Shown here piece after piece: positions 1,283 to 58,047 of a stretch of 64,000 bases of DNA. The DNA lies in sequence record OQ603353.1; one strand, written 5' to 3'. How positions within the stretch are numbered: the stretch's first letter is position 1; every line of letters begins with the position of its first letter. The notes beneath the pieces are model-generated. The model worked only from the letters and a program-made list of their open reading frames with translations, did not search any database and was not told the DNA's origin. Made by a program: the position numbers and the translations under genes.

Positions 1283-1837
1283 CGTACCCAGGTACACATC
1301 AGGAATCTCTAGCTCTACGTTTCTATGAAATCCCCACTAAGGCACAAACCTAGGAATGGCTCCGGCCTCCGGCCTTCTCCATTCGTACAGGTTGTTCTTA
1401 GGGGGAATGCCTTTTCGCTTACGCGATCCTCCCTGATTCAGCCTCTAGAGAACGAAATCCTCTAAAATCACCGCGTTTTTCGTAGTTTACCCTGTAGCTG
1501 GTAAGCCGGAGGCCCAAACTCCGGGTAGTTTAGGGTCCAACCTCCTAAAAATGGTTCCAGAACCTACATTTTCCTGCCTGCGTTTCCGGCAGTTCTGCCC
1601 TTACGGAACCACCCCGCACGGGTCAGGATCGACCCAGGAGGGTCAGAATGGGTCCAGAAGGCCAAAATCGCCTAGGATCGAGCATATCTACGCTGGATGC
1701 ACGCTGTTTTCTCGCAATTTGAGTGTACGAGGGCGATAGAACCCCTCAGCCTACCATCACCTGCTCTGGCGTTGTCCGGGTTGGGGTGGAAATTGTGTCA
1801 TAACAACTTACGGACAACTTCAACTGAGGAACACGTT

Positions 1838-3688: not shown

Positions 3689-3728
3689 TCCTCTTCAATC
3701 AATCATTTCACTACTGAGGTAAAATCCC

Positions 3729-4472: not shown

Positions 4473-5570
4473 ATGTCGAACATTCAGTTTTCTTCGCAGC
4501 GCCGCCCGGTGCGCTCGGCTGTCGCTACTGACTTCCGCTTGTCCGGTCGCAGTGAACGCCTTGTCGGTCAGGACGGCCACATCAACGCAAGCTCCAAGGC
4601 GGACGCACTGAAGACCCTGGCCGCTCTGGCCCAGGAAGTTGCCAGCGGCACCCACGTGGTGACCGAAGAGGCCGCCGCGACTGCGGAGACTATGGCCAAG
4701 GCCCACCGCGAAATGGTGCAGGCCGCTTTCGATGATCCGAAGGAACACGAAGCTCTGGGTGCCGTGCTGACCGACGAAATCAACTTCGCCGCCAACAAGC
4801 AGGGCTTCGCTCGTAAGCTTCTGAAGCGTCAGGAGCTCCAGCAGGGCCAGTACCCCCAGACCCTGCTGCCGTTCCAGAACGTCATGGGCGTCGTGGCTAC
4901 CGGTCCGGTCAAGTGTGAAACTCAGCTGATCCGCAACCGTCGCTTCTGGCCGCAGGAGTTCTTCATCGAAGCTCGCCCGTACATCGAGCAGCGCGAAATC
5001 GATCAGACCAACACGGACATCCTTCAGGACAAGTACCTGGAAGCTCTGGAAGGCATCATGGTGCAGGAAGATCGCACTTGGCGTGCGATGGCCCTCCAGT
5101 CGGTCGGTATCGTGAACCCGTCCACCACCATCGTGGGCGACCTGACCCCGCAGGGTCTGGCCCAGGTTCGCACCCAGCTGATCTCGAACCGCATCGGCGC
5201 GACCAACCTGGTCATGGCCGCCGACCTGTGGAACGACATTATCGGCTCGCAGCAGTTCATGAGCGGCGTCGATCCGGTCACCCGTCACGAAATCGTTCTG
5301 ACTGGTGAAATCGGTCGCCTGCTGGGCATGACCATCACCACTGACGCCTACCGTCACCCGTACCACCACGTTCTGCCGAAGGGCGAGTTCTGGGTGGTGT
5401 CGGATCCGAACTACCACGGTAACTTCACTGATCGTGGCGGCGTCGTCGCCGAGCCGATCGGTATCGCTACCGAGGGCGTCCCGGGCCGTGGTTGGGCGAT
5501 GTTCGAGACCGTTTCGATGGTCATCGCCAACGCCGCTTCGATTGCTCTGGCGCGTCGCGTCGGTTCGTAA
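4473..5570 (+). CDS. Major capsid protein (HK97-fold inferred)
   Basis: 365 aa, highly biased codons, GAGGA RBS, strong terminator downstream; C-terminal GRGWAMFETVSMVIANAASIA typical of MCP P-domain ends. Confidence 0.85.
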   Translation: MSNIQFSSQRRPVRSAVATDFRLSGRSERLVGQDGHINASSKADALKTLAALAQEVASGTHVVTEEAAATAETMAKAHREMVQAAFDDPKEHEALGAVLTDEINFAANKQGFARKLLKRQELQQGQYPQTLLPFQNVMGVVATGPVKCETQLIRNRRFWPQEFFIEARPYIEQREIDQTNTDILQDKYLEALEGIMVQEDRTWRAMALQSVGIVNPSTTIVGDLTPQGLAQVRTQLISNRIGATNLVMAADLWNDIIGSQQFMSGVDPVTRHEIVLTGEIGRLLGMTITTDAYRHPYHHVLPKGEFWVVSDPNYHGNFTDRGGVVAEPIGIATEGVPGRGWAMFETVSMVIANAASIALARRVGS

Positions 5571-5910: not shown

Positions 5911-6366
5911 ATGCTGGAGACGGCGAGTGACAAGAAAAAGAAGGAAGAGCAAAAGCTGCATAAGGACGTGACGGAAATCATTAAGCACGAACGCCTTGGT
6001 GCTCAGAAGGGCCGAGAGGTTGAATTGCTTCAAGCGCATCAAAATAGATTGAGACACGCAGGGCGCTCCATGCAGGCCGAGAGCCTGAGCCCTCACATTC
6101 GCATCAATTCAGTTGAATCCCAAGATCATAGAGAAGCAGCACAGAAGCTCACTCATCGACTCAAGGAAAAGGTGGCCTTCCTCAAAGAAAGTGGCCGCGC
6201 CGACAAGGGCAAGGAGTTGCACACGCAGCTTGCCGAACAATACAAACACTTGCACTATTGGGCCAACGCAGGCCACACCCGCAACAAAAGTCCGACCCTG
6301 CTGCGAGCACGCGACGATTTCTACAATCGTCACATGGAGCATCAGCGGCTTGCGCTGAAACAATAA
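5911..6366 (+). CDS. Small His/Lys-rich protein, putative internal head protein
   Basis: ATG 5911 after GAGGAC RBS (track start 5821 overlaps the terminator); begins MLETASDKKKK. Confidence 0.65.
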   Translation: MLETASDKKKKEEQKLHKDVTEIIKHERLGAQKGREVELLQAHQNRLRHAGRSMQAESLSPHIRINSVESQDHREAAQKLTHRLKEKVAFLKESGRADKGKELHTQLAEQYKHLHYWANAGHTRNKSPTLLRARDDFYNRHMEHQRLALKQ

Positions 6367-11803: not shown

Positions 11804-11805
11804 AT

Positions 11806-11832: not shown

Positions 11833-11854
11833 CACCATCAAGAGGTAATTCTAC

Positions 11855-12370: not shown

Positions 12371-12386
12371 CCAATCAGGCACGTCG

Positions 12387-12418: not shown

Positions 12419-12452
12419 TGATTCAGGCACTCCAAACCACTGAGGTAACAGC

Positions 12453-13358: not shown

Positions 13359-13739
13359 ATGCGTGAGATTGCAGCACTCAGCAAAGAGACTTTTCGTAAC
13401 TGGCCCATCGAGCGTCGGGAAGCCTATCTCAAGGCTCACCCGAACAGCAAGTTCCATTACCATGAATTGATTGAGCGCAAGGGCGTCAAGCTCCCTGCGA
13501 CCACTCCTAAGCTTGGTACAAACTGGGCTGAGCACGCACGCTATCCAGACCCGGATCACCATCGCCGCCACGCGAAGGCACATGCTATCGCGGCGGAGCA
13601 TATCAAGGAACAGGCAAAGAAGCACCGGGCTCATACCCCTGCCTACCATGATTTGCTGGAGCAGGCATCCCTGCGCCTCAAATGGAAGGAACGGCACGAA
13701 AAGCTCTACAAGAAGCTGGCCGACGATCTACTGAAGTAA
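13359..13739 (+). CDS. Small basic His-rich protein, putative internal head protein
   Basis: 126 aa; carries the F..W/L.....AYLKAHPNSKF motif shared with the Topo IB C-terminus. Confidence 0.65.
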   Translation: MREIAALSKETFRNWPIERREAYLKAHPNSKFHYHELIERKGVKLPATTPKLGTNWAEHARYPDPDHHRRHAKAHAIAAEHIKEQAKKHRAHTPAYHDLLEQASLRLKWKERHEKLYKKLADDLLK

Positions 13740-43529: not shown

Positions 43530-44762
43530 ATGGCCACTAGAGTTTCACGGCCGAAAAGGCCATATCTACCTCCCAAGAATAATCGGTTGGTGAGTGTAGG
43601 GCAGCGTAATCTACAAGCCCTGCATCACAACAATCGACAGAACGTAATCAACGCCATCAGCGCTACCGGGTACCCCATCACCCTCTACAACACTCTGAGG
43701 ACGGGCATCAAATGTAGCTGCATGTTCGTACAGCAACCTCCGAACCAACTCCTAGATCAAGAGGGGAAGCTTTCGGAAAGCAATATGAACGCGCTTCTTG
43801 AGCCTAGCTCTGGCCTACTTGATTACGGACAAGACACGCTACCCTCTGAGAACCTGCAATCGGTTCTTCCGGTGGAGCGAATCGCGCTCAACGATACTTC
43901 GCGTCCGATCCTGAATCCATACGAGCGCGCCGAACGCACTCAATTTGACCACATCGACACATCCACTGCACAGATGGATCGGATGGTGGACGATTGGGAT
44001 ACGCTCGAAATGGATACGGAGTTTGACGCAGTGCTGACCCCTGAACGCTTCATGGCTAATCAGGGACGCGCCTGCGCCGTGTGCTTCGGTACGGGTTACG
44101 TGGGTGGGTACGAACTGCTGCATGGCACTCGACTCATCCTGACGCCTCTGCATCCACATGAGCGCTCGGACACGATTGTACTTGATCGCAACGCCAGTCC
44201 TAACACGTTTGACAGCATGACGGAAGGTTGGGTTCGTTTCCAAGTCACGCTGCCGCGAGGCACTGACTACGCCCTATTCCCCCGACTGTTCAACAACACG
44301 ATCCCCATCCCCTACAAGGAATGGAAGCTGTTGGATAACGAGGGCATTCGGATGGACCCTGCACGTATCAAGGAATTGTGCATTGGTAAACCGATCTTCA
44401 TTGAGGTACACGTAGGTAAGCTAGTGTTCACCCATCTGGAGATTCTTCTCAGCGGTCGGCCTCAGAATCAGCCGCTCAAAGCAGACAGTCCTGAAATCCA
44501 GACGATCACTGACGTGAACCGAATGGACGCCAAGACGCCTGTTACGTGGATTCTCGGTGGCACCTACAATATCTCCAAGCGCGCTGTGGTGATTGACCAC
44601 TTGCCGGGAATGAGTAGGCACTGGCGAGTCAACGACATTCAAGCCCGTCGGGATAACCTCAACTGGATTTACGAAGAGACTCTATCGAGTCGATTGGTTG
44701 ATCTGTACGAAATCACCCAACTCCTACGTCCTGTCCGTTATGAAACGGCCCCACTAGACTAA
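43530..44762 (+). CDS. Putative neck/head-closure protein with Zn-binding motif
   Basis: GIKCSC...CAVCFGTGYVGGY motif recalled from myophage neck proteins. Confidence 0.55.
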   Translation: MATRVSRPKRPYLPPKNNRLVSVGQRNLQALHHNNRQNVINAISATGYPITLYNTLRTGIKCSCMFVQQPPNQLLDQEGKLSESNMNALLEPSSGLLDYGQDTLPSENLQSVLPVERIALNDTSRPILNPYERAERTQFDHIDTSTAQMDRMVDDWDTLEMDTEFDAVLTPERFMANQGRACAVCFGTGYVGGYELLHGTRLILTPLHPHERSDTIVLDRNASPNTFDSMTEGWVRFQVTLPRGTDYALFPRLFNNTIPIPYKEWKLLDNEGIRMDPARIKELCIGKPIFIEVHVGKLVFTHLEILLSGRPQNQPLKADSPEIQTITDVNRMDAKTPVTWILGGTYNISKRAVVIDHLPGMSRHWRVNDIQARRDNLNWIYEETLSSRLVDLYEITQLLRPVRYETAPLD

Positions 44763-44770
44763 AACAACTT

Positions 44771-46078
44771 ATGAACAAGCTAAAGCGTCTCGGTCAGTCT
44801 ACGGTGACTGCTCTCACTGATTATCAGTTCCGCACTGTGGGTGAAGTGGAAAAGGTTCTGGCAAGCATGCCGCTGCCTACGATGGAAACTGCCACGTCCC
44901 TGCGTCGTCTCCCCATCTCCGACTCGAAGGAAGAAGTCCCCGTTGAGGACAACAAGCCAGAAGGTTGGACGCCGGGCCAGCGCCTGTCCACCAACAAGTT
45001 CAAGCATACTGGTGTTCCGGGTGAGCCGGTCAAGTTCAATCAGCGTGAATCGCGCGAGATTCGGGCCCTGACCAACCTGCACCACGACTTGGCGGATCAG
45101 GGCGAGAAGATCAACTCTCTCAAGGTCAACGCCCTAAATTCGTTCAAGGGTTCCAAGTTTGAATCTCAGATGGAACGCGCTCTTGGCCTGTTCGACAAGC
45201 GCGAGCGCGAACTGCTGGAACACGAACTGGACGCACACGGTCGCCTGCACGAAATCGCAGAGAATGCGATCCCCGAGGACGCCCGTGTCACGTTCAACAA
45301 GACGGTCAACCCCATCGTCAAGAATCTGGCAGGCAAGTACAAGTCGCTGACCCGTCGCTACACCGTGACTCTGCTGCCGTCGGATCAGAATGTGGTGCAG
45401 TTCCAGCTGATCGTCTCGCTGGAGAAGCTCAAGAATGACAAGGGCTTTGTTTACCCGCACTTCTACATGATTGTCACCTGTATCATCGACAATCGGAATC
45501 ATTACCACTACTACGTGGACACTTCGACGGCCAAGCCGGTTCCCAATGTGACTCCTATCGAGCACGAAAGCCGTGGCTTCTCCTTCACCAAGGCTGATGA
45601 CGGTCGCCGCCTGCTGCAATCGCACCTGCTGGTGGACGAAAGCATCGACCTGAGTATCCCGACTGAACTGCCGCGCAGTAAGGAAGAGATTGAGGGCACC
45701 AAGTTCCGTAACGACAACATCCGCACGGTCAAGGTCAACGCTGACGATCACACGATCACGTTTACCACGGATAAGGATGTTGGTCCTAAGCTGGTGGACA
45801 AGGTGGTAAAGGACATTCTCGCCGATCTTGCTGGTCTGTTCCTGAGCAAGAACCTGCATGAGAAGATGAAGCACAAGGTAACCAAGCTGAGCACCGGCGG
45901 TTACAAGGTGGTGGTGTGGGTTGGTACTCCGACTGCTCGCATCGGTAAGGAGTATCAGGCAGACAGCCATCGTCTCGACGTGTTGCAGCACGATCTGGGT
46001 CTGGATGAAACTCAGGTCAATCAGATTCGCCGCATGCTGCGTGGCCGCTCGCAGATTCGTATTCCGGATCATGAGTAA
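44771..46078 (+). CDS. Virion structural protein, function unknown
   Basis: 435 aa, biased codons, in late operon. Confidence 0.65.
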   Translation: MNKLKRLGQSTVTALTDYQFRTVGEVEKVLASMPLPTMETATSLRRLPISDSKEEVPVEDNKPEGWTPGQRLSTNKFKHTGVPGEPVKFNQRESREIRALTNLHHDLADQGEKINSLKVNALNSFKGSKFESQMERALGLFDKRERELLEHELDAHGRLHEIAENAIPEDARVTFNKTVNPIVKNLAGKYKSLTRRYTVTLLPSDQNVVQFQLIVSLEKLKNDKGFVYPHFYMIVTCIIDNRNHYHYYVDTSTAKPVPNVTPIEHESRGFSFTKADDGRRLLQSHLLVDESIDLSIPTELPRSKEEIEGTKFRNDNIRTVKVNADDHTITFTTDKDVGPKLVDKVVKDILADLAGLFLSKNLHEKMKHKVTKLSTGGYKVVVWVGTPTARIGKEYQADSHRLDVLQHDLGLDETQVNQIRRMLRGRSQIRIPDHE

Positions 46079-47309
46079 GCTTCGGCAGGTGCTGGTAGTG
46101 CAGGCGGACAAGGGCAACAACGTAGATGACCCCAACATTACTCAGGACAGCACGGCGCTGGACAATCACGAACTGGCAATCTTCGGATTCGGCAAGAAGG
46201 CAGCGCATGAACGCAAGCGCACTGCTTTCTACAAGCACCAAGACTCCGAAGTCGAGCACCTGAAAAATCACGCACGCTCTACCGGCTTCAACGGACACAT
46301 CATGCGCGGTGGCAAGTTCACCAAACGATACATCGCGCACATCAAGAAAGTGAATGACCCTGCCATCGCCCACCGGGTCATTCAATTCCATCACAAGAAC
46401 CAGCTTGGTGTGAAGCATCGCCTTGGCTATCATCATGGCTTTACTACCGCAGTAGTAGACGCCGGACCTGATCCGCACACGGATGACTTCCACGATCTAA
46501 ACGCGGAGCATTCCATGACTGAGAAGACTGAAAACGCTGCACTGTGGAACGGTGAAGCAACGCACACGATGGGTGACAACCTTGGCGAGATTATGGACGG
46601 TCGCCAGTTTGTTGGTACCTTGCTTGACTACGAGTTCAACGAAGTGCCCGTGTGGTATCAGCCGCGCAACAACACGCACTTCCGAGGTTCCTCCACACTG
46701 GTGATCCCTGATCGCACGGTGGCCTACGGTAACTGGAAGGTTCTGTCTACCAACGGCAAATTCCACGTGCGCAAGCTGCGTGCTTTCCTCGACAAGCAGC
46801 TGCCGCCCGACCGTCGTACGCCTGACTACAAGGCACTCAAGATCGAAATCAATCCGTCGGAGCTGGTCAAGTCCGTGGACACCACGATCCAGCCCAAGAC
46901 TCAGGTGGACCTGACGGGTGGCACGATGAAGGTCACTCAGGATCGCCGCCTGTGGGACGATGAAACTTCGGTACTGGCGAACGAACAGATCGACATGCTG
47001 CTCACTCAGATGACGGCGGCCGGCTTCAATTTTGTACGTAGCTACTACAGCGTACACTACGCGTTCTACAACGCCAAGCTGGATAACCACGTTCTGTTCA
47101 ACCTCACCACCTCTCGGACCAAGAGCATTCAGGAAATCGAGAATGCACTGAACGCAATCAGCTGGAACTTCCAGCCGTTGCCGTTCCAGTGGCCTGCGTA
47201 CAACTACACCGCTCCCACGTGGCGCGCTATGGTGGAGTTGGATAACGGGCGTCGGCTTGTGATGGCATTGGACTACGCCAAGAGCACTTTGGTGTTCGAC
47301 CTCCTGTAA
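46071..47309 (+). CDS. Modular hypothetical protein (acidic leader, basic His-rich part, globular C-terminus)
   Basis: ATG 46071 overlaps the upstream stop; track start 45921 probably too long. Confidence 0.65.
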   Translation: MSKLRQVLVVQADKGNNVDDPNITQDSTALDNHELAIFGFGKKAAHERKRTAFYKHQDSEVEHLKNHARSTGFNGHIMRGGKFTKRYIAHIKKVNDPAIAHRVIQFHHKNQLGVKHRLGYHHGFTTAVVDAGPDPHTDDFHDLNAEHSMTEKTENAALWNGEATHTMGDNLGEIMDGRQFVGTLLDYEFNEVPVWYQPRNNTHFRGSSTLVIPDRTVAYGNWKVLSTNGKFHVRKLRAFLDKQLPPDRRTPDYKALKIEINPSELVKSVDTTIQPKTQVDLTGGTMKVTQDRRLWDDETSVLANEQIDMLLTQMTAAGFNFVRSYYSVHYAFYNAKLDNHVLFNLTTSRTKSIQEIENALNAISWNFQPLPFQWPAYNYTAPTWRAMVELDNGRRLVMALDYAKSTLVFDLL

Positions 47310-47319
47310 CGGAACTTAT

Positions 47320-49263
47320 ATGGACAGGGAAAAAGAGCACCCATTCGACTATCATCTTCGGATGACGAATCTTGCTGCCAAGAAGGCGCACGAAGCTACG
47401 GCCCAAGGGCAGCACAACGAAGCGCACAAGTGGCATCTGAAAGTCCTGCATCACATAGGCGAAGCGCGCAAGCACAAGCCACCCACCATTCCACCTTCCA
47501 TTGCCTCCGAGCTCGCTAAAATGGCACATAATTCCAAGATGCACACCGCATCTGCGAAGACTTCAACCCTACAGCATGCTCATCGCATCGTTAATGACCA
47601 TGCTTCGGATATCCACGGTGGTGATTCGCACAGCGACGTTTCTAAGCGTCGCTTCACTCGTTATCAGCTCCGCGCTGGTGACCTTGAGAACGCTATGCAC
47701 GAACTCAAGACCGCTGGTTTCAAGACTGCTACCAACCATGCCCCGAGAGCCAAGCATCACTTGGTAAACGGACGGACGCATGTTCTCATCAGTCATCCTG
47801 AAGGCAGGCACGAAACTCACATCGTCAACGTTCAGCACGCAAGTGTTGATTCTTCTGAGAACTCCAACATGGCACTATCTGCGCAGGCACTCGCCAACCT
47901 CAAGTCTATGAATGAAACTGCCCGTGAGGATCATGAAGATCATGAGCCCTACGGCATGGAGAACAAGCCCCGTCCTAAGAAGACTACTGCAACCACGGAA
48001 TCTCCTGCCGAACTCGCGGCGTATGGCACCTATCGGGGTTATCACCCGCATCGCGCCCTACATGACGAAGCGCGCCATCTGTTGGAATCCCGAGGCCACC
48101 ACGCTAGTCATAGCTCTGACCGCCTAGGTGCTCTCTCCGGGGTTAGGGGCATGCGTGTTCAACATCAAGTTGGCAGTACCGCAACTAAACTGCCCCGCCC
48201 CGAACAGCACGCCGAGCACATGGCTGCCACGCAAGAACTCCACAAGCTTGTTCAGAAGCATGGCTTCCAGCATACCTCTGGCGGTACATATCATCATCCT
48301 GAGACGGGCGCAAAGGTTCATATCCATACCCCTCATGTAGGCAAGACGGGTGATAGTTATCTGGATCACTTCGATAATCATACCAATATGAGCATCACCC
48401 ACAGCCTGAGTAAGCGAAAGGCTACGGCGGGTATGGAAGAAGAAGTCGCCCTGTTCAGCAAGGGTCCGAAGTTCGGCAAGAACTGGAAGGATCATGAGAG
48501 CGTGGACGATCACAACCATCACATGCGCCATGCAGGTAAGCATCTTGCGGAGTACAACAAGTACGCTGCCAAGGTGAACGAAGCACGCGCCGCTGGTCGG
48601 GGCGACGAGGCTAACAAGTTGGCAGAGCGTGCTCAGCGCCACCTCGGGTGGAATCGCAACCACCTCGCACGCGCTCGCAAAATCTACCACAAGTCGATGG
48701 CCGCATTTGAGGCGGAAATTGCTTCCCTGACTGTTGAAGCAGCCACTGGTTCTCAAAAGGCAGCAGACGCACGCGCTGACGCACGTAGGATGGAAAAGTT
48801 CCACGGGTATCACCGCCGCGCCAACGACGCTCACTCCAAGCTTGGTCTTCCGGGTGATCACGCCCACGCTCACCGTAGTGCTTCCAAGGACTACGGTACT
48901 GCCTTGCTGAATCATGTTGGTGTGCACGCCCCCGGCACCATTGATAGTAGTCCGGGAGAACACAAGGTAGGTACCCATCGTCACATCAAGGGCTCCTCTG
49001 CTTCGCACATCAGCCTGCACTCTGTCCATAACAAGTTGACGGACCTAGGCTACGAGCACAAGGGCAAGGTAAATCATGATGACAAGGAACTGGAACATCA
49101 TGAGTACCACCACCCGGAGCACAAGTTCACGGTGTCCCTGTATAAGCGTTCTACGCACGACGGCGGCAAGGCGCATCACAGTGTTGGCGCTATCGTACAC
49201 CATGCACCTAATGGATACGAACACCATGCCAAGGGCCTGACTGCTACTAAGCCCACCACGTAA
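47320..49263 (+). CDS. Extremely His-rich modular protein, putative internal head polyprotein
   Basis: 647 aa; repeated His-rich modules separated by short acidic/Ala linkers. Confidence 0.7.
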   Translation: MDREKEHPFDYHLRMTNLAAKKAHEATAQGQHNEAHKWHLKVLHHIGEARKHKPPTIPPSIASELAKMAHNSKMHTASAKTSTLQHAHRIVNDHASDIHGGDSHSDVSKRRFTRYQLRAGDLENAMHELKTAGFKTATNHAPRAKHHLVNGRTHVLISHPEGRHETHIVNVQHASVDSSENSNMALSAQALANLKSMNETAREDHEDHEPYGMENKPRPKKTTATTESPAELAAYGTYRGYHPHRALHDEARHLLESRGHHASHSSDRLGALSGVRGMRVQHQVGSTATKLPRPEQHAEHMAATQELHKLVQKHGFQHTSGGTYHHPETGAKVHIHTPHVGKTGDSYLDHFDNHTNMSITHSLSKRKATAGMEEEVALFSKGPKFGKNWKDHESVDDHNHHMRHAGKHLAEYNKYAAKVNEARAAGRGDEANKLAERAQRHLGWNRNHLARARKIYHKSMAAFEAEIASLTVEAATGSQKAADARADARRMEKFHGYHRRANDAHSKLGLPGDHAHAHRSASKDYGTALLNHVGVHAPGTIDSSPGEHKVGTHRHIKGSSASHISLHSVHNKLTDLGYEHKGKVNHDDKELEHHEYHHPEHKFTVSLYKRSTHDGGKAHHSVGAIVHHAPNGYEHHAKGLTATKPTT

Positions 49264-50102
49264 TGATCGGTGAACGTCTCGCGTACCCAACTGGATATGG
49301 TTTCCAGTTGGGTATTCGCACAAGTGAACGTACCATGTGGTCAGATGACGGGCGCACTGTTCCTCTGGATCATAAGCCGCAGGTAGTTGCCAATCCTATC
49401 AACTGCCCGCATCCAATCCCCGAGGATCAATTGATCCCTGCTGATTGGCGCAATCTGCTCACGGCCAAGCTTCGGTGTCCTGCTTTTGGTACGCAACTTC
49501 TGTACGGCATGTGGGCGACCATCGCTCACCTGAGCAACTTCAAAGCTGCACAGACGCCGTTGATCGAAATCACGGATGATCTACCTGCGCATAACCTTGG
49601 CAACTTCAACATTGTCCACGGTCGGCCTCGCATACAGGTAGCCAAGTCGCGCATCTACACTTACGCGGCGCTGGCGTCGATTATCGCTCACGAAACTGCG
49701 CACCAAATTCAACGCACCGTGTTCAACTCTTCGGAAGAGTCCCACGGCGAACTGTTCGACAAGATTTGTAGGGAGATTACCTCCCGGACTGGCATTGCGA
49801 TCCATCGTAGTGTCGATTTTGTTGGGGACAGGTCATTCGCTGTTAGCGATCCCCTGCCTAGCAAGTACCCCATTTACTACATCATCGCTGATGGGCGGGT
49901 ATCGTACACGGATAGTCATAGTGAAGTGACGGAAATAATCACTGCTCCTGACGCTATTGATGCAGACCTCCAAGTCTACAAGAGCCACGACATTAGCTTG
50001 ATTGACTGGCTCCGTCCTGAAACTGACCTGAAACGATTTACCCGAGTTCGCCCGGACGTGCTAAAGGTCATCGCACACAGAGGCACACGCATTTACCCAT
50101 GA
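49263..50102 (+). CDS. SprT-like zinc metalloprotease
   Basis: IIAHETAH (HExxH) followed by HGELF, the SprT signature. Confidence 0.82.
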   Translation: MIGERLAYPTGYGFQLGIRTSERTMWSDDGRTVPLDHKPQVVANPINCPHPIPEDQLIPADWRNLLTAKLRCPAFGTQLLYGMWATIAHLSNFKAAQTPLIEITDDLPAHNLGNFNIVHGRPRIQVAKSRIYTYAALASIIAHETAHQIQRTVFNSSEESHGELFDKICREITSRTGIAIHRSVDFVGDRSFAVSDPLPSKYPIYYIIADGRVSYTDSHSEVTEIITAPDAIDADLQVYKSHDISLIDWLRPETDLKRFTRVRPDVLKVIAHRGTRIYP

Positions 50103-52105
50103 GCAACATTCACGATTTCATCAAGACCCAGCTGCTGGCTGCTGCCCATTTCCAAGAAACGCTGGATGCGGGTGGCAAGAAGTGGCTCAAGAGTGGTGGT
50201 ATCGCCGACGGTCGGAAGTTCCTAGAGGAACGCAAGTTCCCTAAATCGGTCATCAAGGCATACGATACTGCCATGAAGAACGTCCTTGCAGGTAAGGACT
50301 TTGAGGAAGACGTTGATCCGCATTTGCAGGAAGTACAGAATGCAGTGAAGGAGCGTCTGCCCAAGCTGACCAAGGACACTTCTATTCCGATCGCAGACAT
50401 CAAGACTCTGAAAGACGTGAGTCTGATCCTGCGCACTGAATCGGACTCTGCATGGGCACGTGTCGAGAAGGACATTGGCCGACTGCGTGACGAAGACCTC
50501 AACCGCATCATCGCTCCTGCTGTGGAATCCTCCAGCAAGTACGTCAAAGACCTCAAGGCAGCGTTCAAGAAACTGACGGGCAAAGATGGTACTGACTTCC
50601 GTGACCTAGAAGAACTGGCTGATCTTGATACTGATGAGTATCGGGAAGCAGTCAAGAAGATCATGGGCAAGAAGCCGGCTGCTGCTAAGGAATTCACCAA
50701 GGCACGCAGCGAGTACACCAAGGCCAGCAAGAAGGCCCACATGGCTCATGTACGTGCTTCCGGCAGTCACCTGATGGACGTGGAGACGGCCAAGAAACAC
50801 CTTGAGTCTAAGGGCTTCCGTCACTCCATCCCTGAAGGCTTCAAGGGCAAGCTTGATGAAAACGGACGTATCCACACTGAGCATGGTGAACCCATCGCCG
50901 GTGGTATCTCCGGCACCGTCAAGATGAATCCGAAGTACGAGAAGGGTTCTAGCGTCAATGTCCTGACCTACTATCCTCCGGGTGCGAAGACGCCGCAGTA
51001 CCTGTTCACCGCAGGTGCCAAGGCTAACGCCATCCAGAAGAAGAGTCAGAAGGTTGACGAACTGTCCGACAAGATTGGTGACCTGCGTAAGAAGTGGGGC
51101 GCTGACCTGAACAGTAAGGATCCGAGCACTCGCATTGCTGCTGCCATTCTCGAAGCCTGCTACCACACGTCTGCACGTATCGGTAATCTGAGCAACAAGA
51201 ATGATGGCATGACGACCTTGAAGGGTAGGAATGTCAAGGTCAACGGGGATACGGTCACCTTCAGCTACACTGGCAAATCGGACCAGCAGCAGAAGCACGT
51301 CATGAAGGGCGACGATCCCATTTCCAAGAAGGCTGTGGAAATCATCAAGGCCCTCAAGGAAAACGCGAAGCCTGACGACCTGCTTTTCCGCAACAAGAAT
51401 CGCCGCGTCGGTAGCCGTCAGGTCAACGATTACTTCACCTCCCTCGGTTCCCCCACCACGGTGCACAAGATGCGCCACGTTCGCGGCAACGCGATCATGA
51501 AGGAAGAACTGAAGAAGAAGCCGAAGACTGACGACGACAAGAAGATCACGGCCTTCCTGACTGCGGCTCTGGCCAAGGTTGGTGAGCAGCTGGGTCACTT
51601 CAACAAGGGCGAGGTCACCTTCGCCACTGCCCTGCAATCCTACGTCTCTCCGTCAATCGTTGAGAAGTATTATGACAGCTACAACATTCGTCCGCCCGCA
51701 CGCATTCAGAAGGTTATTGACCAAGCCAAGAAGGACAATGGTGAACCGACTACTAAGTTGCAGGACTTGCCGCATCACGGCGACGTGGCGGAAAAGCCTA
51801 AGGTACCTCGGGCGGTTAAGCGTGTAGCAAAGGAAGAAAAGGAAGCACCGAAGCCGCGTGTAGTGAAAAAGGTGGAGAAGCCTGCACCGAAGCCGCTGCG
51901 TCAAGTCAAGAAGGTGGAGAAGCCTGAACCCAAGGAACGCAAGCCCACACGCACGGTCAAGCACATTGAGCTGGGTCCCCTGTCTGCACAGCCTGTGAAG
52001 ACGCCAGCTTGGTTCCAGAAGTTGAGCGGTAACGCACAGCGGACTTACATCAAGGAAAATCCGCACACCAAGTTGAAGCCCACCAAGCTGCCGGGCTCGA
52101 AGTAA
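50099..52105 (+). CDS. DNA topoisomerase type IB with N- and C-terminal extensions
   Basis: SARIGN (Arg 51176), GMTTL, FSYTGKS (Lys 51275), HKMR (Arg 51473), LGH (51596), QSYVSP (Tyr 51641); Lys/Pro-rich tail. Confidence 0.88.
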   Translation: MSNIHDFIKTQLLAAAHFQETLDAGGKKWLKSGGIADGRKFLEERKFPKSVIKAYDTAMKNVLAGKDFEEDVDPHLQEVQNAVKERLPKLTKDTSIPIADIKTLKDVSLILRTESDSAWARVEKDIGRLRDEDLNRIIAPAVESSSKYVKDLKAAFKKLTGKDGTDFRDLEELADLDTDEYREAVKKIMGKKPAAAKEFTKARSEYTKASKKAHMAHVRASGSHLMDVETAKKHLESKGFRHSIPEGFKGKLDENGRIHTEHGEPIAGGISGTVKMNPKYEKGSSVNVLTYYPPGAKTPQYLFTAGAKANAIQKKSQKVDELSDKIGDLRKKWGADLNSKDPSTRIAAAILEACYHTSARIGNLSNKNDGMTTLKGRNVKVNGDTVTFSYTGKSDQQQKHVMKGDDPISKKAVEIIKALKENAKPDDLLFRNKNRRVGSRQVNDYFTSLGSPTTVHKMRHVRGNAIMKEELKKKPKTDDDKKITAFLTAALAKVGEQLGHFNKGEVTFATALQSYVSPSIVEKYYDSYNIRPPARIQKVIDQAKKDNGEPTTKLQDLPHHGDVAEKPKVPRAVKRVAKEEKEAPKPRVVKKVEKPAPKPLRQVKKVEKPEPKERKPTRTVKHIELGPLSAQPVKTPAWFQKLSGNAQRTYIKENPHTKLKPTKLPGSK

Positions 52106-52112
52106 GTAATAC

Positions 52113-52143
52113 CCCACCGACTAACCCTCGGTGGGTTCTGTCT
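52113..52143 (+). terminator. Hairpin/terminator after Topo IB
   Basis: CCCACCGA-CTAACCC-TCGGTGGG then TTCTGTCT. Confidence 0.55.
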
Positions 52144-52165
52144 TTGCTTTGTAGGAGAATCAACA

Positions 52166-53125
52166 ATGCCTGTTCGTATGCTGCAAGGTATCGCCAAGAA
52201 AGCGGGTACCACGCACGACCACGCAGAGAAGATTTGGGACGATAGCAAGAAAATCGTTGATAAGAAGTTCTCGGAAGATGACCCGAGCTACTACCCATAC
52301 CTGACAGGGATCGTCAAACGTCGCCTAGGCTTGTCGAAAGGTGAGAAGGCGATGTTCGACTCCCAAGACTCTACTAACGAGGAAGCTGACGTGGAAGAAA
52401 CCGCAAAGAAGAATTGGAGTCAGGAAGTAACGGACAACGAAAAGTTCCATCCAAAGGAAGGTATCTTCAAGCAGAGCTCGGAGAAGATCGCCAAGTATCT
52501 GCTTAGTAAGGGTAAAGGAAAGGCCATGAGCCGCCTCACCTTCTACATCAACCGGGCTGGCAAGTCGCTGAGTCCCGAAGATCGTAATCGTCTTGAGCGT
52601 GCCAAGAAGATTATCTCCAATGCTACTGGCAAGGAAACGGCCAAGGCGCACGACTATACCCCGCAGTACAAGACGCCTGAACAAATCGACAAGGGCCTGC
52701 GTATTACGGACAAGTTCTTCCGCACCATCTACTTCCCCAAGCTGGATAGCGACGGCAAGATCGTTGGCTACGATGAAGAACAAGTCAGTTCGGTGGACTT
52801 CGTGTTCCTGCAATCTGATCCCGACACTGATCCTGTGTGGACTGATCCCCACACCAGTGCGGTTGTCAAGGCGAGCACCCTGCATCACTACATGGTTCAC
52901 CACGCAACCCCTAACGCACAGCGCCGTCGTCGGAACCTGCTGCAAGCTTACGCATCGGCAACCAACTTCAATGGCCCGATCATGAGCAACGGTTCTGTCA
53001 CCGCTGAGTTCATGTGTCACATGCACGGCCATAGCAGCATTGCTATGGCCGAAGTAAGCCGCTCCTTTGAGTACCACAACCGAGTTCATGCTGGCGTGGA
53101 TGACGATCTGATTGCCTCCAGCTGA
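52166..53125 (+). CDS. Three-module protein containing a DUF3175-like domain
   Basis: KKNWSQEVT..GIFK..IA..AMSRLTFYINRAGKSL..RLERAK (52406-52608) matches DUF3175 as I recall it. Confidence 0.7.
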   Translation: MPVRMLQGIAKKAGTTHDHAEKIWDDSKKIVDKKFSEDDPSYYPYLTGIVKRRLGLSKGEKAMFDSQDSTNEEADVEETAKKNWSQEVTDNEKFHPKEGIFKQSSEKIAKYLLSKGKGKAMSRLTFYINRAGKSLSPEDRNRLERAKKIISNATGKETAKAHDYTPQYKTPEQIDKGLRITDKFFRTIYFPKLDSDGKIVGYDEEQVSSVDFVFLQSDPDTDPVWTDPHTSAVVKASTLHHYMVHHATPNAQRRRRNLLQAYASATNFNGPIMSNGSVTAEFMCHMHGHSSIAMAEVSRSFEYHNRVHAGVDDDLIASS

Positions 53126-53170
53126 TACGGATGAATCCTCATAGTAGGGAGTGGCCAACCTAACTTTTTA

Positions 53171-53557
53171 ATGAGGAGACCGATGTTCGACCTGTCCATG
53201 ATCGAAACGCTGAACAACTTCCTTGAGACGCCGACCGCTGCGCGCGCAATCGCCTTCGGTATGCTTATCTCTTGGGGTGGTACGCAACTCGTCAAGTTCA
53301 ATCCGCTGGTTCGGAAGCTGCTGAATCATCTGCCGCCCGAAATGGGCCGGACGGTTGTGCAAGCAATCGCTTTCCTGCTGGCATTCATTCCTACGTTCCT
53401 GCTGTGGCCGGGTATGGGTACGGTCAAGGTACTGGGTAGCATTGTTGTAGGCACGTGGTCCCCCAAGGCGTATCAAAAGGCGACGGTGGTTCTCTACCAC
53501 TTCTTCCCTTACCTTGAGCCCAAGCTGAGTGCCACCCCTGTTCCGAAGGAGAAGTAA
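53171..53557 (+). CDS. Membrane protein, holin candidate
   Basis: 128 aa, two to three hydrophobic segments, charged C-terminus, ends before an intergenic gap. Confidence 0.5.
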   Translation: MRRPMFDLSMIETLNNFLETPTAARAIAFGMLISWGGTQLVKFNPLVRKLLNHLPPEMGRTVVQAIAFLLAFIPTFLLWPGMGTVKVLGSIVVGTWSPKAYQKATVVLYHFFPYLEPKLSATPVPKEK

Positions 53558-53622
53558 TCCTACTTGGAAGGTAGGAGTAGCAACAACATGGATGTTCCAC
53601 CTACTACTAATGGAGATTCGCC

Positions 53623-53877
53623 ATGTATAGCATCACCAATCTCGGCTTTGAACGTCTCGTTGTTGGCAGCCTGGGTTTCGAGCCGCAGGTTGCCCACCCG
53701 ATCAGTGATCTGGACTTCGCCCGCCTGTCGGTAGAGGAAAAGTCCCTGATTAACGCCAAGGTTGCCGAGGGCACCTTCTCCGTGGTGCACACCGCTGAAA
53801 AGCAGCTGGTCTTCTCTCCGGCTCCCCTCTCGGCTGGCCTCGGTCCCATCGTTGCTGCGGAAAATCCGCAGGGCTGA
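53623..53877 (+). CDS. Small structural protein
   Basis: 84 aa, GGAG RBS; N-terminus resembles that of 53901. Confidence 0.6.
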   Translation: MYSITNLGFERLVVGSLGFEPQVAHPISDLDFARLSVEEKSLINAKVAEGTFSVVHTAEKQLVFSPAPLSAGLGPIVAAENPQG

Positions 53878-53900
53878 TCCACACTTAGAGGTTCTCCAGT

Positions 53901-54698
53901 ATGTATGTGTTTACCAACACCTCAGCTAATCAGATGACGTTCGGCGACCTGACGCTGGCCCCGAACGCCACCACTGAATTCCCTGACGATCGGGTGGCTG
54001 CCCTGAGCACCCACAACCTGAAAGCGCTCAACGATTTTGCCAACGGCAATCCGCTGATCCTGAAGGTCGAGTATCAGGCTTCGGTTCCGCCGGTCACCAT
54101 CGGTCCTGTATCCGCCGCTCCTGCCATTTCTACTCCGTTCGGTAACAAACTGATGCAGGCTGCTGATGCAGATGCTGCTAAGGAACTGCTCGGGGAAGGT
54201 CAAGGTAGTGGCTATACGTTGCCTGTCGCTACGGGCTCGGTCCTTGGTGGCGTCAAGATCGGTGCGGGCCTTAGTGCTACCGCCGATGGCACCCTGAGTC
54301 GCAGCGCCCTTGTTGCCGGAGACATTCCAGATTTGGACGCCGCCAAGATCGCCTCCGGCACTCTGGCGGTTGCGCGTTTGGGTACTGGCACTCCAAGTGC
54401 TGCTAACGTGCTTTTGGGTTCGGGCGCTTTTGGCGTACCTCCGACTGCTACTAAGGCAACCGCTCTGGCTACGGGCCGTACCTTCACTCTGAGTGGCGGG
54501 GCTTCCGGTACCACCGCCTCTCCGTTCGATGGCTCTGCTAACGCCACCCTCAACGTTACGCTGGCTACTCCGACAAGTGCTCTCCGTGGCGGTGTCCTCC
54601 AGCAGGCCGCCATTGCTGACTTGACCGCCGCTCCTACCCAGCAGGATTTCAACGCCCTGCTGGCAGCCCTGCGTGCAGCCTCGGTAATCGCTTCCTGA
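53901..54698 (+). CDS. Head fibre/decoration protein
   Basis: YTLPVAT..LGGVKIG.GL repeat and C-terminal APTQQDFNALLAALRAASVIA head-fibre motif. Confidence 0.72.
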   Translation: MYVFTNTSANQMTFGDLTLAPNATTEFPDDRVAALSTHNLKALNDFANGNPLILKVEYQASVPPVTIGPVSAAPAISTPFGNKLMQAADADAAKELLGEGQGSGYTLPVATGSVLGGVKIGAGLSATADGTLSRSALVAGDIPDLDAAKIASGTLAVARLGTGTPSAANVLLGSGAFGVPPTATKATALATGRTFTLSGGASGTTASPFDGSANATLNVTLATPTSALRGGVLQQAAIADLTAAPTQQDFNALLAALRAASVIAS

Positions 54699-54781
54699 CA
54701 ACAACCGGGCCAAGGACGGCCCACTAGTCGGGTAAACCTTTCAAATTAGCCGGGTAAGGGTGCCTCAAATACGGTACTTGG

Positions 54782-54793
54782 CAGCTAATTTTA
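54782..54793 (+). promoter_or_regulatory. Candidate late promoter motif (copy 3)
   Basis: CAGCTAATTTTA, intergenic, upstream of the adaptor gene. Confidence 0.5.
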
Positions 54794-54829
54794 CTGTGAA
54801 GGCGAGGGCTATTCCTCCGTGCTTTTCAG

Positions 54830-56176
54830 GTGCAGGGATTCACCACTTCCTATGGCCTCAACTCAATGTCAGCCTTTCCTAATGTAATCAATGACGCTGT
54901 TGTCGGACAACAAGTCGTAGCCAACGCGAGCTTCTTCATTGCTCCTAACACGGATACGACCGGATTGATTGCCCGGTACAGTATCGTAGACGCAGACGAT
55001 GCGGAGTGGACTTCCGGCATCGCCACAAACATTGTGGTGTCGCCTCTAGGTTCGCGCTCCAAGGTGAATGCCTCGGCTTCGGTCGATATTCCCTACACGC
55101 TACCTGTCGAGTTCTACGGTACCAAGTATCAACTGGCGTGGACCCTTGAAACTCAAGATGGTACATTCGTTTCCAGTTATATCGAGTCGTTCAACGTCAA
55201 GCCTGTCATGCAGGGTGGCGTGTTCGGCGTACCGGACATCGTAGAAGCAGCAACAGACAAAACGATTCTCAAAGCGGTACTGCCTTCCAACGATCAAGTG
55301 GAAGTGCTGGTGTTCAAGGGCAACGCCTGCCTTAACAACGGCAGCCCTGTCATCCTGCAACCGGGTGACAAGGTATTCAACGGTACGCAGTATCTGGGTA
55401 GTTTCAACCATGCTACCCTGCGTAACCCCGGAGCGTCCCCTCCCCCGAATTCTGCGTTGGGGATCAACCAGCCGTCCCCTGCTCTCATACAAGCGATGGC
55501 AGCAGCGCGCGGCTTGAACCCCGCCGACATTACAGCCAGCAATGAATCGCTGACTCCTTCACTTGAGCCCTATAACTTGTGGTGGCAATACAAGGATGAG
55601 GATTCGGGTGAGGTAGTTGTCGAGGATAGCTATCTGTATCATGTGACTCCAATGATCCTACAGGCAGGACGGGAGCTACAACAGTTTGTGAACCGCGCTA
55701 ACAACGAAGGCCGGTTGCAGGAACTGACCATCGACCTGAACGTAATCATTCACTTCCTGAAGCAAGGCGGCGACTACTTCAACAGTGTCGGTATGCCAAC
55801 CTTCTTTGACTTCACCTGTGCTAATGGACCCTTCCGTCAATTCTGGGTCATGTGCAGTGCAGTGCGTCTCCTCCGTAGTCAGTACCTTCTGGAGGCCGAA
55901 CGTAGTATGGTGATGCAGGGCCAGAGCGTTACACTGGACATTGACATTACTGCGTACTACGAAACTGCGGCATCGGATGCCCAAGCATTCGTTGACCAAT
56001 ACTTGCCGGAGTTCAAGCAGAATATCACACGCAAGGGTCTGCTGACCGGCGACGGTGACTACGGCAACGGCGGCATCATTTCGAGGAACGTGGGTGCTAT
56101 GGGCATTCAGTTGTCCGCGACCACCAACCTGTTCTTCGGTTGGCGTAATCAGTACGCACGCCGTGGCCTGTTCTAA
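54830..56176 (+). CDS. Putative head-tail adaptor/neck protein
   Basis: C-terminal FLKQGGDYFNSVG..FWVMCSAVRLLRSQYLLEAE..GQSVTLDID helical adaptor-like domain; start may be ATG 54866. Confidence 0.55.
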   Translation: MQGFTTSYGLNSMSAFPNVINDAVVGQQVVANASFFIAPNTDTTGLIARYSIVDADDAEWTSGIATNIVVSPLGSRSKVNASASVDIPYTLPVEFYGTKYQLAWTLETQDGTFVSSYIESFNVKPVMQGGVFGVPDIVEAATDKTILKAVLPSNDQVEVLVFKGNACLNNGSPVILQPGDKVFNGTQYLGSFNHATLRNPGASPPPNSALGINQPSPALIQAMAAARGLNPADITASNESLTPSLEPYNLWWQYKDEDSGEVVVEDSYLYHVTPMILQAGRELQQFVNRANNEGRLQELTIDLNVIIHFLKQGGDYFNSVGMPTFFDFTCANGPFRQFWVMCSAVRLLRSQYLLEAERSMVMQGQSVTLDIDITAYYETAASDAQAFVDQYLPEFKQNITRKGLLTGDGDYGNGGIISRNVGAMGIQLSATTNLFFGWRNQYARRGLF

Positions 56177-56190
56177 GGGAAGGGACGATA

Positions 56191-56688
56191 ATGGATAACA
56201 CAACGGCCGACTACGCGCGCGCTGTGTTTGAGTACCTCATCCAGCGGTTTCCGAAGGTGTGGGGTAAATGCAAGTACAGCACGAACTTCCTTGGTGGAGG
56301 GGCCACTAGATACAGATTGTTTTCCTCTACTCCCGACACCTGCGTGACCTATGGCAGCAGTTACTTCCAAGGTTATGCCTACCATGAAGTCATCCTCGAC
56401 CACACGGTAAAGGGTGATTGCGAATGCCTGCTTTACACAGCACGGTCTATTTACGAAGACACAGGAAATAACAGCAGCACCACCTATCCGGTAGACATCG
56501 CTGCTGTCAAGGTTGACATGAGCAAACCCAGTTCGGAAACGGCACAACAGATCGCTACCGAAATCTTGGAGTCTTTGCATGCCAATGCCGCACAGATTGA
56601 GGACGTGCCCAATGAAAGCTTTGTTCACGCCTGCGATTGGCACGCAAAGCAGTTGTATAGCGTGTCACCGGAGCAGACTGGTGGCTAA
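56191..56688 (+). CDS. Hypothetical protein
   Basis: 165 aa ORF filling the operon gap, AAGGGA RBS. Confidence 0.6.
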   Translation: MDNTTADYARAVFEYLIQRFPKVWGKCKYSTNFLGGGATRYRLFSSTPDTCVTYGSSYFQGYAYHEVILDHTVKGDCECLLYTARSIYEDTGNNSSTTYPVDIAAVKVDMSKPSSETAQQIATEILESLHANAAQIEDVPNESFVHACDWHAKQLYSVSPEQTGG

Positions 56689-56696
56689 TTTCAAAC

Positions 56697-57170
56697 ATGC
56701 CAAGACTTCAACTAATGTCCGAAGATGCTAACACTCGGACTGCTGTCGAGTTGGCGCAGGTACGCCGCGACCTTGATACCCTTCTCAAGATCGTTCGGGA
56801 TGGCAACGGTACGGCGGCCCTCATCAACCGAATGCAGTCTGTAGAAAAAGACCTTACTCACCTTGTAGCCCGTGACAAGGAAGCAAAAGAAGAGCTTGAA
56901 AAGCTCAAGGTGCAGTACGCGGAGTTGTCAAAGACTCTAATTGACGTAAACCATTCTGTCGGCACCATCAGCGCAGATTTTGCTCGCTTTGTTCAGGAGT
57001 TCAAGATCAGCGAGGATGCACGCGACAAGGCGCGCATCAAGAAGACCGATCTGCTGTGGGGCATGATTACCACGGTTGTCGTTTCCCTCGTTGTTAACTA
57101 CGTGCTCAACCACAAGGTTGTTCCTTCCCAGCCCTCTGTTCCCACCACCGCTGAATCGCGGTCCAAGTAA
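56697..57170 (+). CDS. Coiled-coil protein with C-terminal transmembrane helix
   Basis: Heptad-rich, then LLWGMITTVVVSLVVNYVL; possible holin/antiholin-type component. Confidence 0.6.
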   Translation: MPRLQLMSEDANTRTAVELAQVRRDLDTLLKIVRDGNGTAALINRMQSVEKDLTHLVARDKEAKEELEKLKVQYAELSKTLIDVNHSVGTISADFARFVQEFKISEDARDKARIKKTDLLWGMITTVVVSLVVNYVLNHKVVPSQPSVPTTAESRSK

Positions 57171-57186
57171 TTCACTGGAGATAAAC

Positions 57187-58047
57187 ATGAACGCAAGCTT
57201 CAATGACCGCATCGGTGCTCGTCTGGCCCAGCGCACTAACGGCATCAAGCCGCACGCTGACATTCTGAGCTACGAACTGGTTAGCCCGACCGTGGCTAAG
57301 GTTGTCGTCGCCCACTCTCACCGTGGCACCACTGCTGAGAATCGCGCCGCTCTGGCTTCGCTGCTGGAAGGCCGTGGCAACGTCATACCGCACAGCTTCC
57401 GCGAAATCGAAACGGACAACGCCCACCAGCGCCGTATGCTGTCGGTCGGTTTCGTTGGCGCCAACGTCCTGTCTGAGGAACTGAGCGAAGAACGCGCCAG
57501 TCAGCTGAAGGAGATTGCCAAGAACGTGCTGATGGACGACACCGACAACAGCATGTGGCAGGTTACGCAGGCTTCGGACGGCCGCAAGTTCATCCGCCGT
57601 CAGCACAACGAAGACCTTGCGGAGCTGATGACCGCTACCGCTTCGGTGAACCCGGCCGCCATCGTGCCGAAGCACTTCACCGAAATCGCTGGCACCATCG
57701 TCGATACCTCGGGCCCGTTCACCTATGCTGCTTACGTGGACGCTGACACCCATCAGGTGCGTTTCGGTTACGTGGTGGAACACGCTACCGTCTACAACGG
57801 CTACAAGCACACCATTCTGCCGCGTGACGCTTCGGAAGTCGAGTACGTGTCTGCCTCCCTGATCGTGGAAGCCGCCTACAACGTCGATCCGAACAACCGT
57901 CTGACCACCGCTCGCAACCGCTTGATGGAAACCGCCGGTATTCCGGACATTGATGCGGTCAAGAGCTACTTCCGTAAGGAATTCGGCTACGGCCCTGAGT
58001 TCCTGCGCGAACTGGAAGCCGAGATTGACGAGCACGCTGTCGCCTAA
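57187..58047 (+). CDS. Abundant virion structural protein (inferred)
   Basis: ATG 57187 with GGAG RBS; MCP-like codon bias; followed by a terminator. Confidence 0.65.
   Translation: MNASFNDRIGARLAQRTNGIKPHADILSYELVSPTVAKVVVAHSHRGTTAENRAALASLLEGRGNVIPHSFREIETDNAHQRRMLSVGFVGANVLSEELSEERASQLKEIAKNVLMDDTDNSMWQVTQASDGRKFIRRQHNEDLAELMTATASVNPAAIVPKHFTEIAGTIVDTSGPFTYAAYVDADTHQVRFGYVVEHATVYNGYKHTILPRDASEVEYVSASLIVEAAYNVDPNNRLTTARNRLMETAGIPDIDAVKSYFRKEFGYGPEFLRELEAEIDEHAVA

Follow-up and report, generated by a model that had tools for sequence, protein, structure and literature searches.

In bacteriophage T4 the head maturation protease gp21 follows a rule of L/I-x-E form, and the internal proteins of the head carry short N-terminal leaders, the capsid-targeting sequences, which gp21 removes. 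The assemblins of herpesviruses have maturation and release sites of the form (V/L/I)-x-Ala|Ser. Here we deal with a tripeptide, E-[TILV]-A, which recurs in a stretch of 64,000 nucleotides (nt) from sequence record OQ603353.1 (the whole stretch is called the window, and positions are those of the window unless another genome is named), and in particular in a block of genes at 43530-58047. An earlier reading of the letters (the sequence-only reading) had taken the motif for a candidate site of the prohead protease, placed at acidic-to-basic domain boundaries and cut after Ala. Our analysis suggests that the instances listed there are a mix of unrelated cases and one probably genuine signal.

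Every phage protease related to gp21 that has been characterised cleaves on the C-terminal side of Glu (PMC5694885, PMC10052503). In the jumbo phages with proteases of MEROPS S80 (phiKZ gp175, 201phi2-1, SPN3US gp245) many head and ejection proteins are cut at S/A/G-x-E or A-x-E, and many internal proteins have N-terminal propeptides, for which more than one site in a propeptide is known; SPN3US has an A-x-E site in which P4 is preferably Val and P1' preferably Ser (PMC10052503, PMC5694885). In the literature we found no mapped cleavage sites for the lineage of phiRSL1 and PaBG.

It is to this lineage that the DNA analysed here belongs. Over positions 44000-58000 the window matches Xanthomonas phage Ep026 and Erwinia phage Ep032 at 100% identity and the annotated phage PhiXhv-16 at 99.9%, and the phage of the window is Ep026/PhiXhv-16, a 227-kb jumbo Xanthomonas myovirus whose capsid protein assigns it to the phiRSL1 / BcepSauron / PaBG / Lu11 jumbo myovirus lineage. 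By its predicted structure the phage encodes a protease of the gp21/assemblin fold. The gene (PhiXhv-16 5741-6547, phrog_18299) lies outside the window, beside the portal and TerL genes. The AlphaFold model of the protein has a predicted local distance difference test score (pLDDT) of 84.5, and its top match in the PDB is 5jbl, which is T4 gp21 (probability 0.99, E 5e-3, target template modelling (TM) score 0.47-0.49); the next fold matches are the herpesvirus proteases of KSHV, EBV, HCMV and HSV-1. His131 and Ser189 are invariant in 37 homologues and are candidate catalytic residues. Sequence identity to T4 gp21 is only about 19%, and sequence searches of Pfam and the PDB with the protease gave no match.

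The eleven strings listed by the sequence-only reading are all in frame at their positions, in coding sequences (CDSs) which match the PhiXhv-16 annotation, and the window holds 21 further E-[TILV]-A sites, 11 of these within 43530-58047. When expected counts are calculated from the composition of each protein, the 64 CDSs of the window have 32 sites against 23.2 expected. In the block, which comprises 14 CDSs, there are 20 against 6.1. ETA by itself occurs there 10 times against 1.62 expected (Poisson 8e-6; 3.36 expected under a first-order Markov null) and ranks first of all 8000 tripeptides in an unbiased scan, with a Bonferroni-corrected value of about 0.065. The other 50 genes of the window, among them the tail genes, are depleted (12 against 17.2). 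Outside the window the genome is at expectation, with 20 ETA against 17.6 and 77 E-[TILV]-A against 75.2; these counts are based on our own calls of open reading frames (ORFs), which recovered 58 of the 61 known plus-strand stop codons of the window. Protein N-termini genome-wide show no excess of the motif (5 against 4.4 expected). A repeat at the DNA level was considered and rejected: GARACNGC is not over-represented, and of its 12 copies on the plus strand 11 are in frame 0 of plus-strand genes, none is in frames 1 or 2, and one is outside plus-strand genes.

The same gene block was taken from six metagenomic relatives (L018, L024, L025, L026, L027 and L028), in which the replication of the excess was a test fixed beforehand. 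The homologue of the 43530 protein is 79% identical in L024 and 53-57% identical in L025-L028, and the topoisomerase of the block is 67% identical in L018. The test came out positive. ETA is found 25 times in the six blocks against 6.0 expected, and in the four least redundant relatives 13 times against 3.97 (3.29 under the Markov null). The latter make up about nine distinct sites, most of them non-orthologous to sites of the window. Control genes 5' of the block in L025, L027 and L028 are flat (ETA 4 against 2.1, E-[TILV]-A 10 against 10.1). Other searches were less productive: tblastn of the orphan block proteins against cultured phages returned the same genus only, an IMG/VR scan with the topoisomerase found no relatives, a homologue search with the same protein gave only three hits, probably swamped by its Lys-rich tail, and PHROGs and Pfam searches with the 44771, 46005 and 47320 proteins yielded nothing useful.

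We consider it on balance probable that the motif is non-random in the block. A recurrence beyond chance is partly borne out: it is probable for 43530-58047 and the same block of its relatives, and it is not seen in the rest of the genome. It should be noted that a serious case can be made, at clearly less than even odds, for chance combined with unrelated causes: a degenerate motif was picked by eye, the region was chosen afterwards, and the excess would come from inheritance, from helices rich in Ala and Glu, and from look-alikes such as HExxH. The genome-wide counts agree with this explanation. The p-value in the block is also of the same order as the 2e-5 which IWH, the top tripeptide of the remaining window genes, reaches by chance alone, and when clustering is scored in any window of 14 genes ETA ranks 17th of the 8000 tripeptides, with 16 that cluster more strongly, mostly low-complexity runs. 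As described below, some of the instances can be explained in other ways, the topoisomerase and the His-rich protein conserve the motif poorly, and the charge does not flip across it. Against chance stand the positive test in the relatives at mostly non-orthologous sites, the flat control genes, the turnover of the motif within one leader in all six orthologues, and the conserved placement at domain boundaries.

The reading we prefer is that the motif is a signal read by the gp21-like protease, which, by analogy with the characterised enzymes, would cut after the Glu and not after the Ala; we give this reading a probability of about 0.37. The signal would be E-x-A, with Thr ahead of Ile, Val and Leu in the middle and Gln or Asn in some relatives, recurring in a clade-specific late-gene block, where it would tend to mark boundaries of leaders or modules. 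As a processing or targeting signal of the head maturation protease it would have its scissile bond at x-x-E|T-A, as in the relatives of gp21, so that the motif would be the P1 to P2' part of a Glu-type site. It is possible but doubtful that at least some of the instances are cleavage sites; if they are cleaved, the cut would quite probably follow the Glu. A cut after Glu is favoured over one after Ala because of the analogy to gp21 relatives and because Leu is preferred before the Glu: it stands two residues before it in 14 of 66 sites against 5.5 expected.

The genes of the block which carry the motif are the following, all on the plus strand.

43530..44762, +: first gene of the block, 410 amino acids (aa), phrog_21298, function unknown; ETA at residues 405-407 (nt 44742-44750), six residues from the C-terminus.
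44771..46078, +: clade-conserved protein of 435 aa; ETA at residues 39-41 (nt 44885-44893) and EIA at 161-163 (nt 45251-45259).
46071..47309, +: protein of 412 aa; ELA at nt 46170-46178.
47320..49263, +: hypervariable protein of 647 aa, 13% His and 12% Ala; five E-[TILV]-A, from nt 47509, 47914, 48010, 48442 and 48715.
49263..50102, +: SprT-like zinc metalloprotease, 279 aa; ETA at nt 49692-49700, in the middle of an HExxH.
50099..52105, +: type IB topoisomerase, 668 aa, with a Lys/Pro-rich tail; ELA from nt 50612 and ETA from nt 50783.
52166..53125, +: protein of 319 aa with a DUF3175 domain at residues 84-155 (nt 52415-52630); ETA on both sides of the domain.
54830..56176, +: head-tail connector protein, 448 aa, phrog_17327; ETA from nt 55961.
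56191..57170, +: two small proteins of 165 and 157 aa; ETA from nt 56536 and ELA from nt 56748.
57187..58047, +: protein of 286 aa, phrog_17573; EIA from nt 57511 and 57682, ETA at nt 57928-57936.

In three of these proteins, those at 44771, 46071 and 52166, sites are placed where processing could act. The AlphaFold model of the 44771 protein (7 sequences, mean pLDDT 68) has helices at residues 2-31, then a disordered part (32-81), and from about residue 82 on a folded core. In this model ETA39 is at the start of the disordered linker and EIA161 is within a confident long helix. Each of the six orthologues has an E-[TLV]-A within its variable N-terminal leader, and these sites fall on three distinct positions of the alignment. 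The family is kept at fold level in proteins of unknown function of Motura, Yoloswag, PaBG and phiRSL1, and a PDB fold search with the 44771 model gave no significant match. The arrangement of leader, linker with site, and core is modelled in a single family, where leader removal is putative. The ELA of the 46071 protein falls within an extra N-terminal part of about 145 aa which includes a His-rich module; this extension is found in the window and L024 and is absent from four relatives. At the junction of extension and core the relatives have E-T-A or E-Q-A and the window has E-N-A, and in three relatives this junction is the N-terminus of the protein itself. The 52166 protein has ETA at residues 78-80 (nt 52397-52405) and 157-159 (nt 52634-52642), which bracket DUF3175; L018, L025 and L026 retain the downstream site in the form ETA or EVA, and at the upstream one L025 and L026 read EIA and L018 reads VTA. 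Of the earlier proposal of a candidate protease site at boundaries, the position of some sites at leader and domain borders has thus held up, and neither the cut after Ala nor the acidic-to-basic step has.

Some further similarities were seen around these proteins. A protein encoded at PhiXhv-16 210202-210768, outside the window in the replication region, has QDSPETASLRRL near its N-terminus, which resembles PTMETATSLRRL of the 44771 protein; the 46071 and 52166 proteins, too, have a QDS[TP] stretch ahead of the motif. The annotated start of the 46071 gene, at 46005, looks too early; the ATG at 46071 fits the L024 orthologue, including the same overlap of 8 nt with the upstream gene.

A bolder version of the preferred reading, which we regard as unlikely, is that the modular late proteins which a clade of the lineage has in this block (the His-rich protein, DUF3175 proteins, the type IB topoisomerase and the SprT-like protein) are packaged internal or ejection proteins whose leaders and modules are split by an E-T-A signal, the protease either reading residues past the cut (E|T-A) or cutting after Ala. 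If this were true, the protease would have a specificity undescribed among prohead proteases of phages, and modules would be released within the capsid in the manner of a polyprotein.

Several observations weigh against the motif as a signal for the protease. The statistic in the window is post hoc and borderline after correction for 8000 tripeptides, and the relatives are non-independent, so that with about nine distinct ETA sites their relatedness weakens the replication to an effective p of roughly 0.01-0.02. The acidic-to-basic boundary which the sequence-only reading described does not exist on average: over 19 sites the mean net charge is -0.11 in the 12 residues upstream and -0.11 in the 12 residues downstream. 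The charge around the motif is the same as at other Glu positions, and in the relatives it is likewise not significant. What precedes the Glu varies from site to site in the window, and the third position before the putative Glu cut is A, G or S in just about 5 of the 20 block sites, which departs from the A/S/G-x-E and L/I-x-E rules. The ETA of the topoisomerase could not be found in L024, whose homologue is 85% identical, and in the 67% identical homologue of L018 it has become AKA in an otherwise identical flank. Autocleavage of the protease at the motif was rejected, as the ETA near its N-terminus is not kept in homologues with 77-78% identity. No enrichment of the motif is seen in the capsid, scaffold-like and 237-aa head proteins. 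Finally, the block proteins are no more than putative components of the virion.

The unrelated cases among the instances are an HExxH, residues within helices, the N-terminus of one protein and probably that of another, and non-conserved chance matches such as the one of the topoisomerase. The ETA of the SprT-like protein, which is not among the listed strings, is, from its sequence, the active-site motif HExxH of a metalloprotease: HETAH is found at residues 143-147, the Pfam SprT-like profile is matched with E 1.8e-5 (25.0 bits against a cut-off of 25.6), and relatives with precomputed SprT-like hits have HEIAH, HEVAH or HEYVH at the same place. Of the five sites in the 47320 protein, the 58% identical homologue of PhiXhv-15 retains three and has one more shifted by a residue, which is about what the identity predicts. 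The protein is 730 aa long in PhiXhv-15, with a large insertion, and 546 aa long in L024.

Outside the block two of the listed instances coincide, one of them probably, with the start of a protein.

5911..6366, +: small protein after the capsid gene and tRNA-Asn; ETA at nt 5917-5925.
13359..13739, +: protein of 126 aa beginning MREIA; the listed site, 13365, falls in residues 1-5.

The start of the first protein is most likely the ATG at 5911 and not the annotated position 5821, which looks too early: the ATG has a GAGGA Shine-Dalgarno sequence 10-14 nt upstream, and the annotated GTG has none and abuts tRNA-Asn. With this probable start MLETA would be the N-terminus of the protein itself. The MREIA protein has one 18-aa match (E = 0.001), roughly in register, to the stretch following ETA175 of a longer protein in L028; that protein belongs to another family of the relatives, of which three orthologues start with MxxETAN.

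It has also to be considered that the motif plays a structural part, for example as an N-terminal cap or first helical turn, in related modules which were duplicated and shuffled, so that it is shared by ancestry and stays uncleaved. In favour of this are the residues which follow the motif: among 66 sites Tyr or Trp stands at +5, five residues past the Ala, 15 times where 2.8 are expected, and Lys stands at +3 14 times where 5.1 are expected, which suggests a longer element, ETA-x-x-K-x-[YW]. One L026 protein has five sites spaced 80-110 residues apart, and there is module-level similarity between families, with stand-alone proteins that begin with the same signature. An all-against-all BLAST of 78-residue motif segments (three residues before the motif and 75 from it), a search of limited sensitivity, found no in-register similarity between families except for one weak link, and paralogy of the segments after the motif, which was not detected in this search, was rejected within that limit. 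The motif of the 44771 protein, moreover, is in a disordered, poorly aligned linker and not in a folded module. We find this explanation rather unlikely. A look-alike was noted between residues 244-256 of the 57187 protein (nt 57916-57957) and residues 3-16 of the protease (PhiXhv-16 5741-5790), with 10 of 14 aligned residues identical and, within the proteome, E = 0.005; ETAGI is at the centre of each stretch, and a weaker look-alike is found at residues 409-422 of the portal protein.

The head proteins encoded in the window allow the site of the cut to be discussed. The relevant features are:

1697..4442, +: an acidic scaffold-like protein of 663 aa and a virion structural protein of 237 aa, 5' of the capsid gene.
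4473..5570, +: major capsid protein of 365 aa with the HK97 fold; its N-terminal extension measures about 75 aa.
4581-4592 (capsid residues 37-40): I-N-A-S, near-invariant.
4635-4643 (capsid residues 55-57): E-V-A, non-conserved.
4662-4697 (capsid residues 64-75): variable Glu-rich linker, the candidate cut region.

The scaffold-like protein has two E-[TILV]-A against 1.7 expected and the 237-aa protein none against 0.4, and by these counts neither is enriched; Pfam and PDB sequence searches with the latter gave nothing useful. In 134 homologues of the capsid protein no E-[TILV]-A hot spot was seen in the N-terminal extension. A prohead protease site would be expected to be enriched in head proteins over tail and non-structural ones. 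The capsid, scaffold-like and 237-aa proteins are flat, as is the rest of the genome, and the tail genes are depleted (12 against 17); the enriched proteins are those of the block, whose place in the head is putative.

The PaBG capsid protein is reported to lose about 20% of its mass, and several virion proteins of that phage run as multiple bands (PMC7412058). A cut after Glu75 in the linker of the PaBG protein corresponds to a loss of 20.0%, and one after its only E-L-A to 8.4%. The extension is missing from gp27 of phage G (282 aa, PDB 6wkk), whose start aligns to about residue 70 of the window protein, and the boundary of the extension reads x-[A/T/E]-E in 7 of 12 capsid proteins of the lineage; the window protein has E66 and E72. 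By analogy the capsid protein is most likely trimmed after a Glu of the linker, E66 or E72 in the phage of the window.

The cut after Ala proposed by the sequence-only reading would be a new specificity for a gp21-like phage protease recognising E-[T/I/L/V]-A. It can draw on the same enrichment and boundary evidence as a cut after Glu, and also on the fold which the protease shares with the herpesvirus assemblins, enzymes that cut Ala|Ser. In addition the otherwise variable extension of the capsid protein has a near-invariant [ILVF]-N-A-[SG] at residues 37-40, with Asn in 94% and Ala in 95% of the 134 homologues; this resembles the Ala|Ser site of the assemblins and differs as a motif from E-x-A. 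On the other side, the characterised gp21-related phage enzymes all cut after Glu, of the 32 window sites only 4 have Ser directly behind the motif, and the capsid motif is I-N-A and not E-x-A. A cut at I-N-A would take off 10.8% of the mass, and this value fits the loss of about 20% reported for PaBG as poorly as does the 8.4% for E-L-A. Furthermore, 4 of the 12 capsid proteins of the lineage are entirely without E-[TILV]-A. With a gp21-like protease whose relatives cut after Glu, a capsid protein with no conserved E-[TILV]-A and a mass loss in PaBG that fits Glu75, the Ala-terminated specificity is the least supported of the readings, and we judge it very improbable.

How far the locus resembles the described systems can now be stated. 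T4 gp21 is the best structural match of the protease of this phage, the over-representation of Leu two residues before the Glu of the motif resembles L/I-x-E, and the capsid protein of the window has an N-terminal extension with a Glu at the boundary in most relatives. Unlike in T4, the protease identity is low and without a Pfam hit, the conserved Thr-Ala past the Glu is outside the T4 rule, and cleavage is putative. As with the T4 capsid-targeting sequences, the 44771 protein has a conserved leader followed by a disordered stretch with the motif, and block proteins of relatives start M-x-x-E-T-A; the difference is that the leaders of different block families are not detectably similar, and that packaging into the head is putative here. 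The S80 phages are also jumbo phages with a gp21-related protease, and some sites of the relatives read A/S-S/A-V-E|T-A, whereas in the window the third position before the cut follows the S80 preference for A, G or S in only the fraction of sites given above, and the lineage differs (a 365-aa capsid protein, phiRSL1/PaBG). The herpesvirus assemblins share with the locus the fold of the protease, the idea of Ala at P1 and the [ILVF]-N-A-[SG] of the capsid family, but the phage motif is E-x-A, with Ser rarely next, and a cut at I-N-A|S does not fit the mass loss in PaBG. PaBG itself belongs to the same lineage and has a homologous capsid protein, 237-aa protein and protease; the block proteins of the window have relatives in PaBG at fold level only, and the position of the cut in PaBG is deduced from the mass loss.

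Three results are useful already: the protease is gp21-like and encoded far from the capsid gene, the boundary of the capsid propeptide is probably near residues 66-72, and the list of motif instances is unfit as a cleavage map. If some of the sites are real, they would give a handle for predicting which orphan proteins of this little-studied lineage enter the capsid and where they are trimmed, and they would extend the range of specificities of the proteases with the gp21/assemblin fold.

The window as a whole has the capsid module, tRNA-Asn, tail and baseplate genes, a lysis region and the block; some of these have the following positions.

1697-5570: capsid module.
5733-5808: tRNA-Asn.
43530-53125: mostly orphan gene block.
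Up to about 58047: head-fibre-like, connector and neck-region genes.

Just 5' of the connector gene, at 53901-54698, is a gene for an Ala/Gly/Thr-rich protein of 265 aa with a weak head-fibre match (Pfam Phage_head_fibr, E 3.5e-8). The SprT-like gene overlaps the topoisomerase IB gene by 4 nt (49263-52105), and the two are adjacent in L018, L024, L025, L026 and L028, with one gene between them in L027. In eukaryotes proteases of the SprT/Wss1 type remove trapped topoisomerase-DNA adducts. Because of the adjacency and of this role, a functional coupling of the SprT-like protease and the topoisomerase is possible.

Lys or Arg follows several of the motif sites and would be exposed by a cut after Ala. 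PhiXhv-16 has, outside the window at 114427-115260, a gene annotated as leucyl/phenylalanyl-tRNA-protein transferase, an enzyme of the N-end rule; a link between the two is pure speculation. It should also be mentioned that Ep026, whose host is listed as Xanthomonas sp., and Ep032, whose host is listed as Erwinia sp., are 100% identical over 14 kb despite the differing host genera. Very long antisense ORFs occur opposite real plus-strand genes, for instance at 9791-12580 on the minus strand, where an ORF of 929 aa is opposite a tail gene of 665 aa; these ORFs are a by-product of the 55% G+C and not genes.

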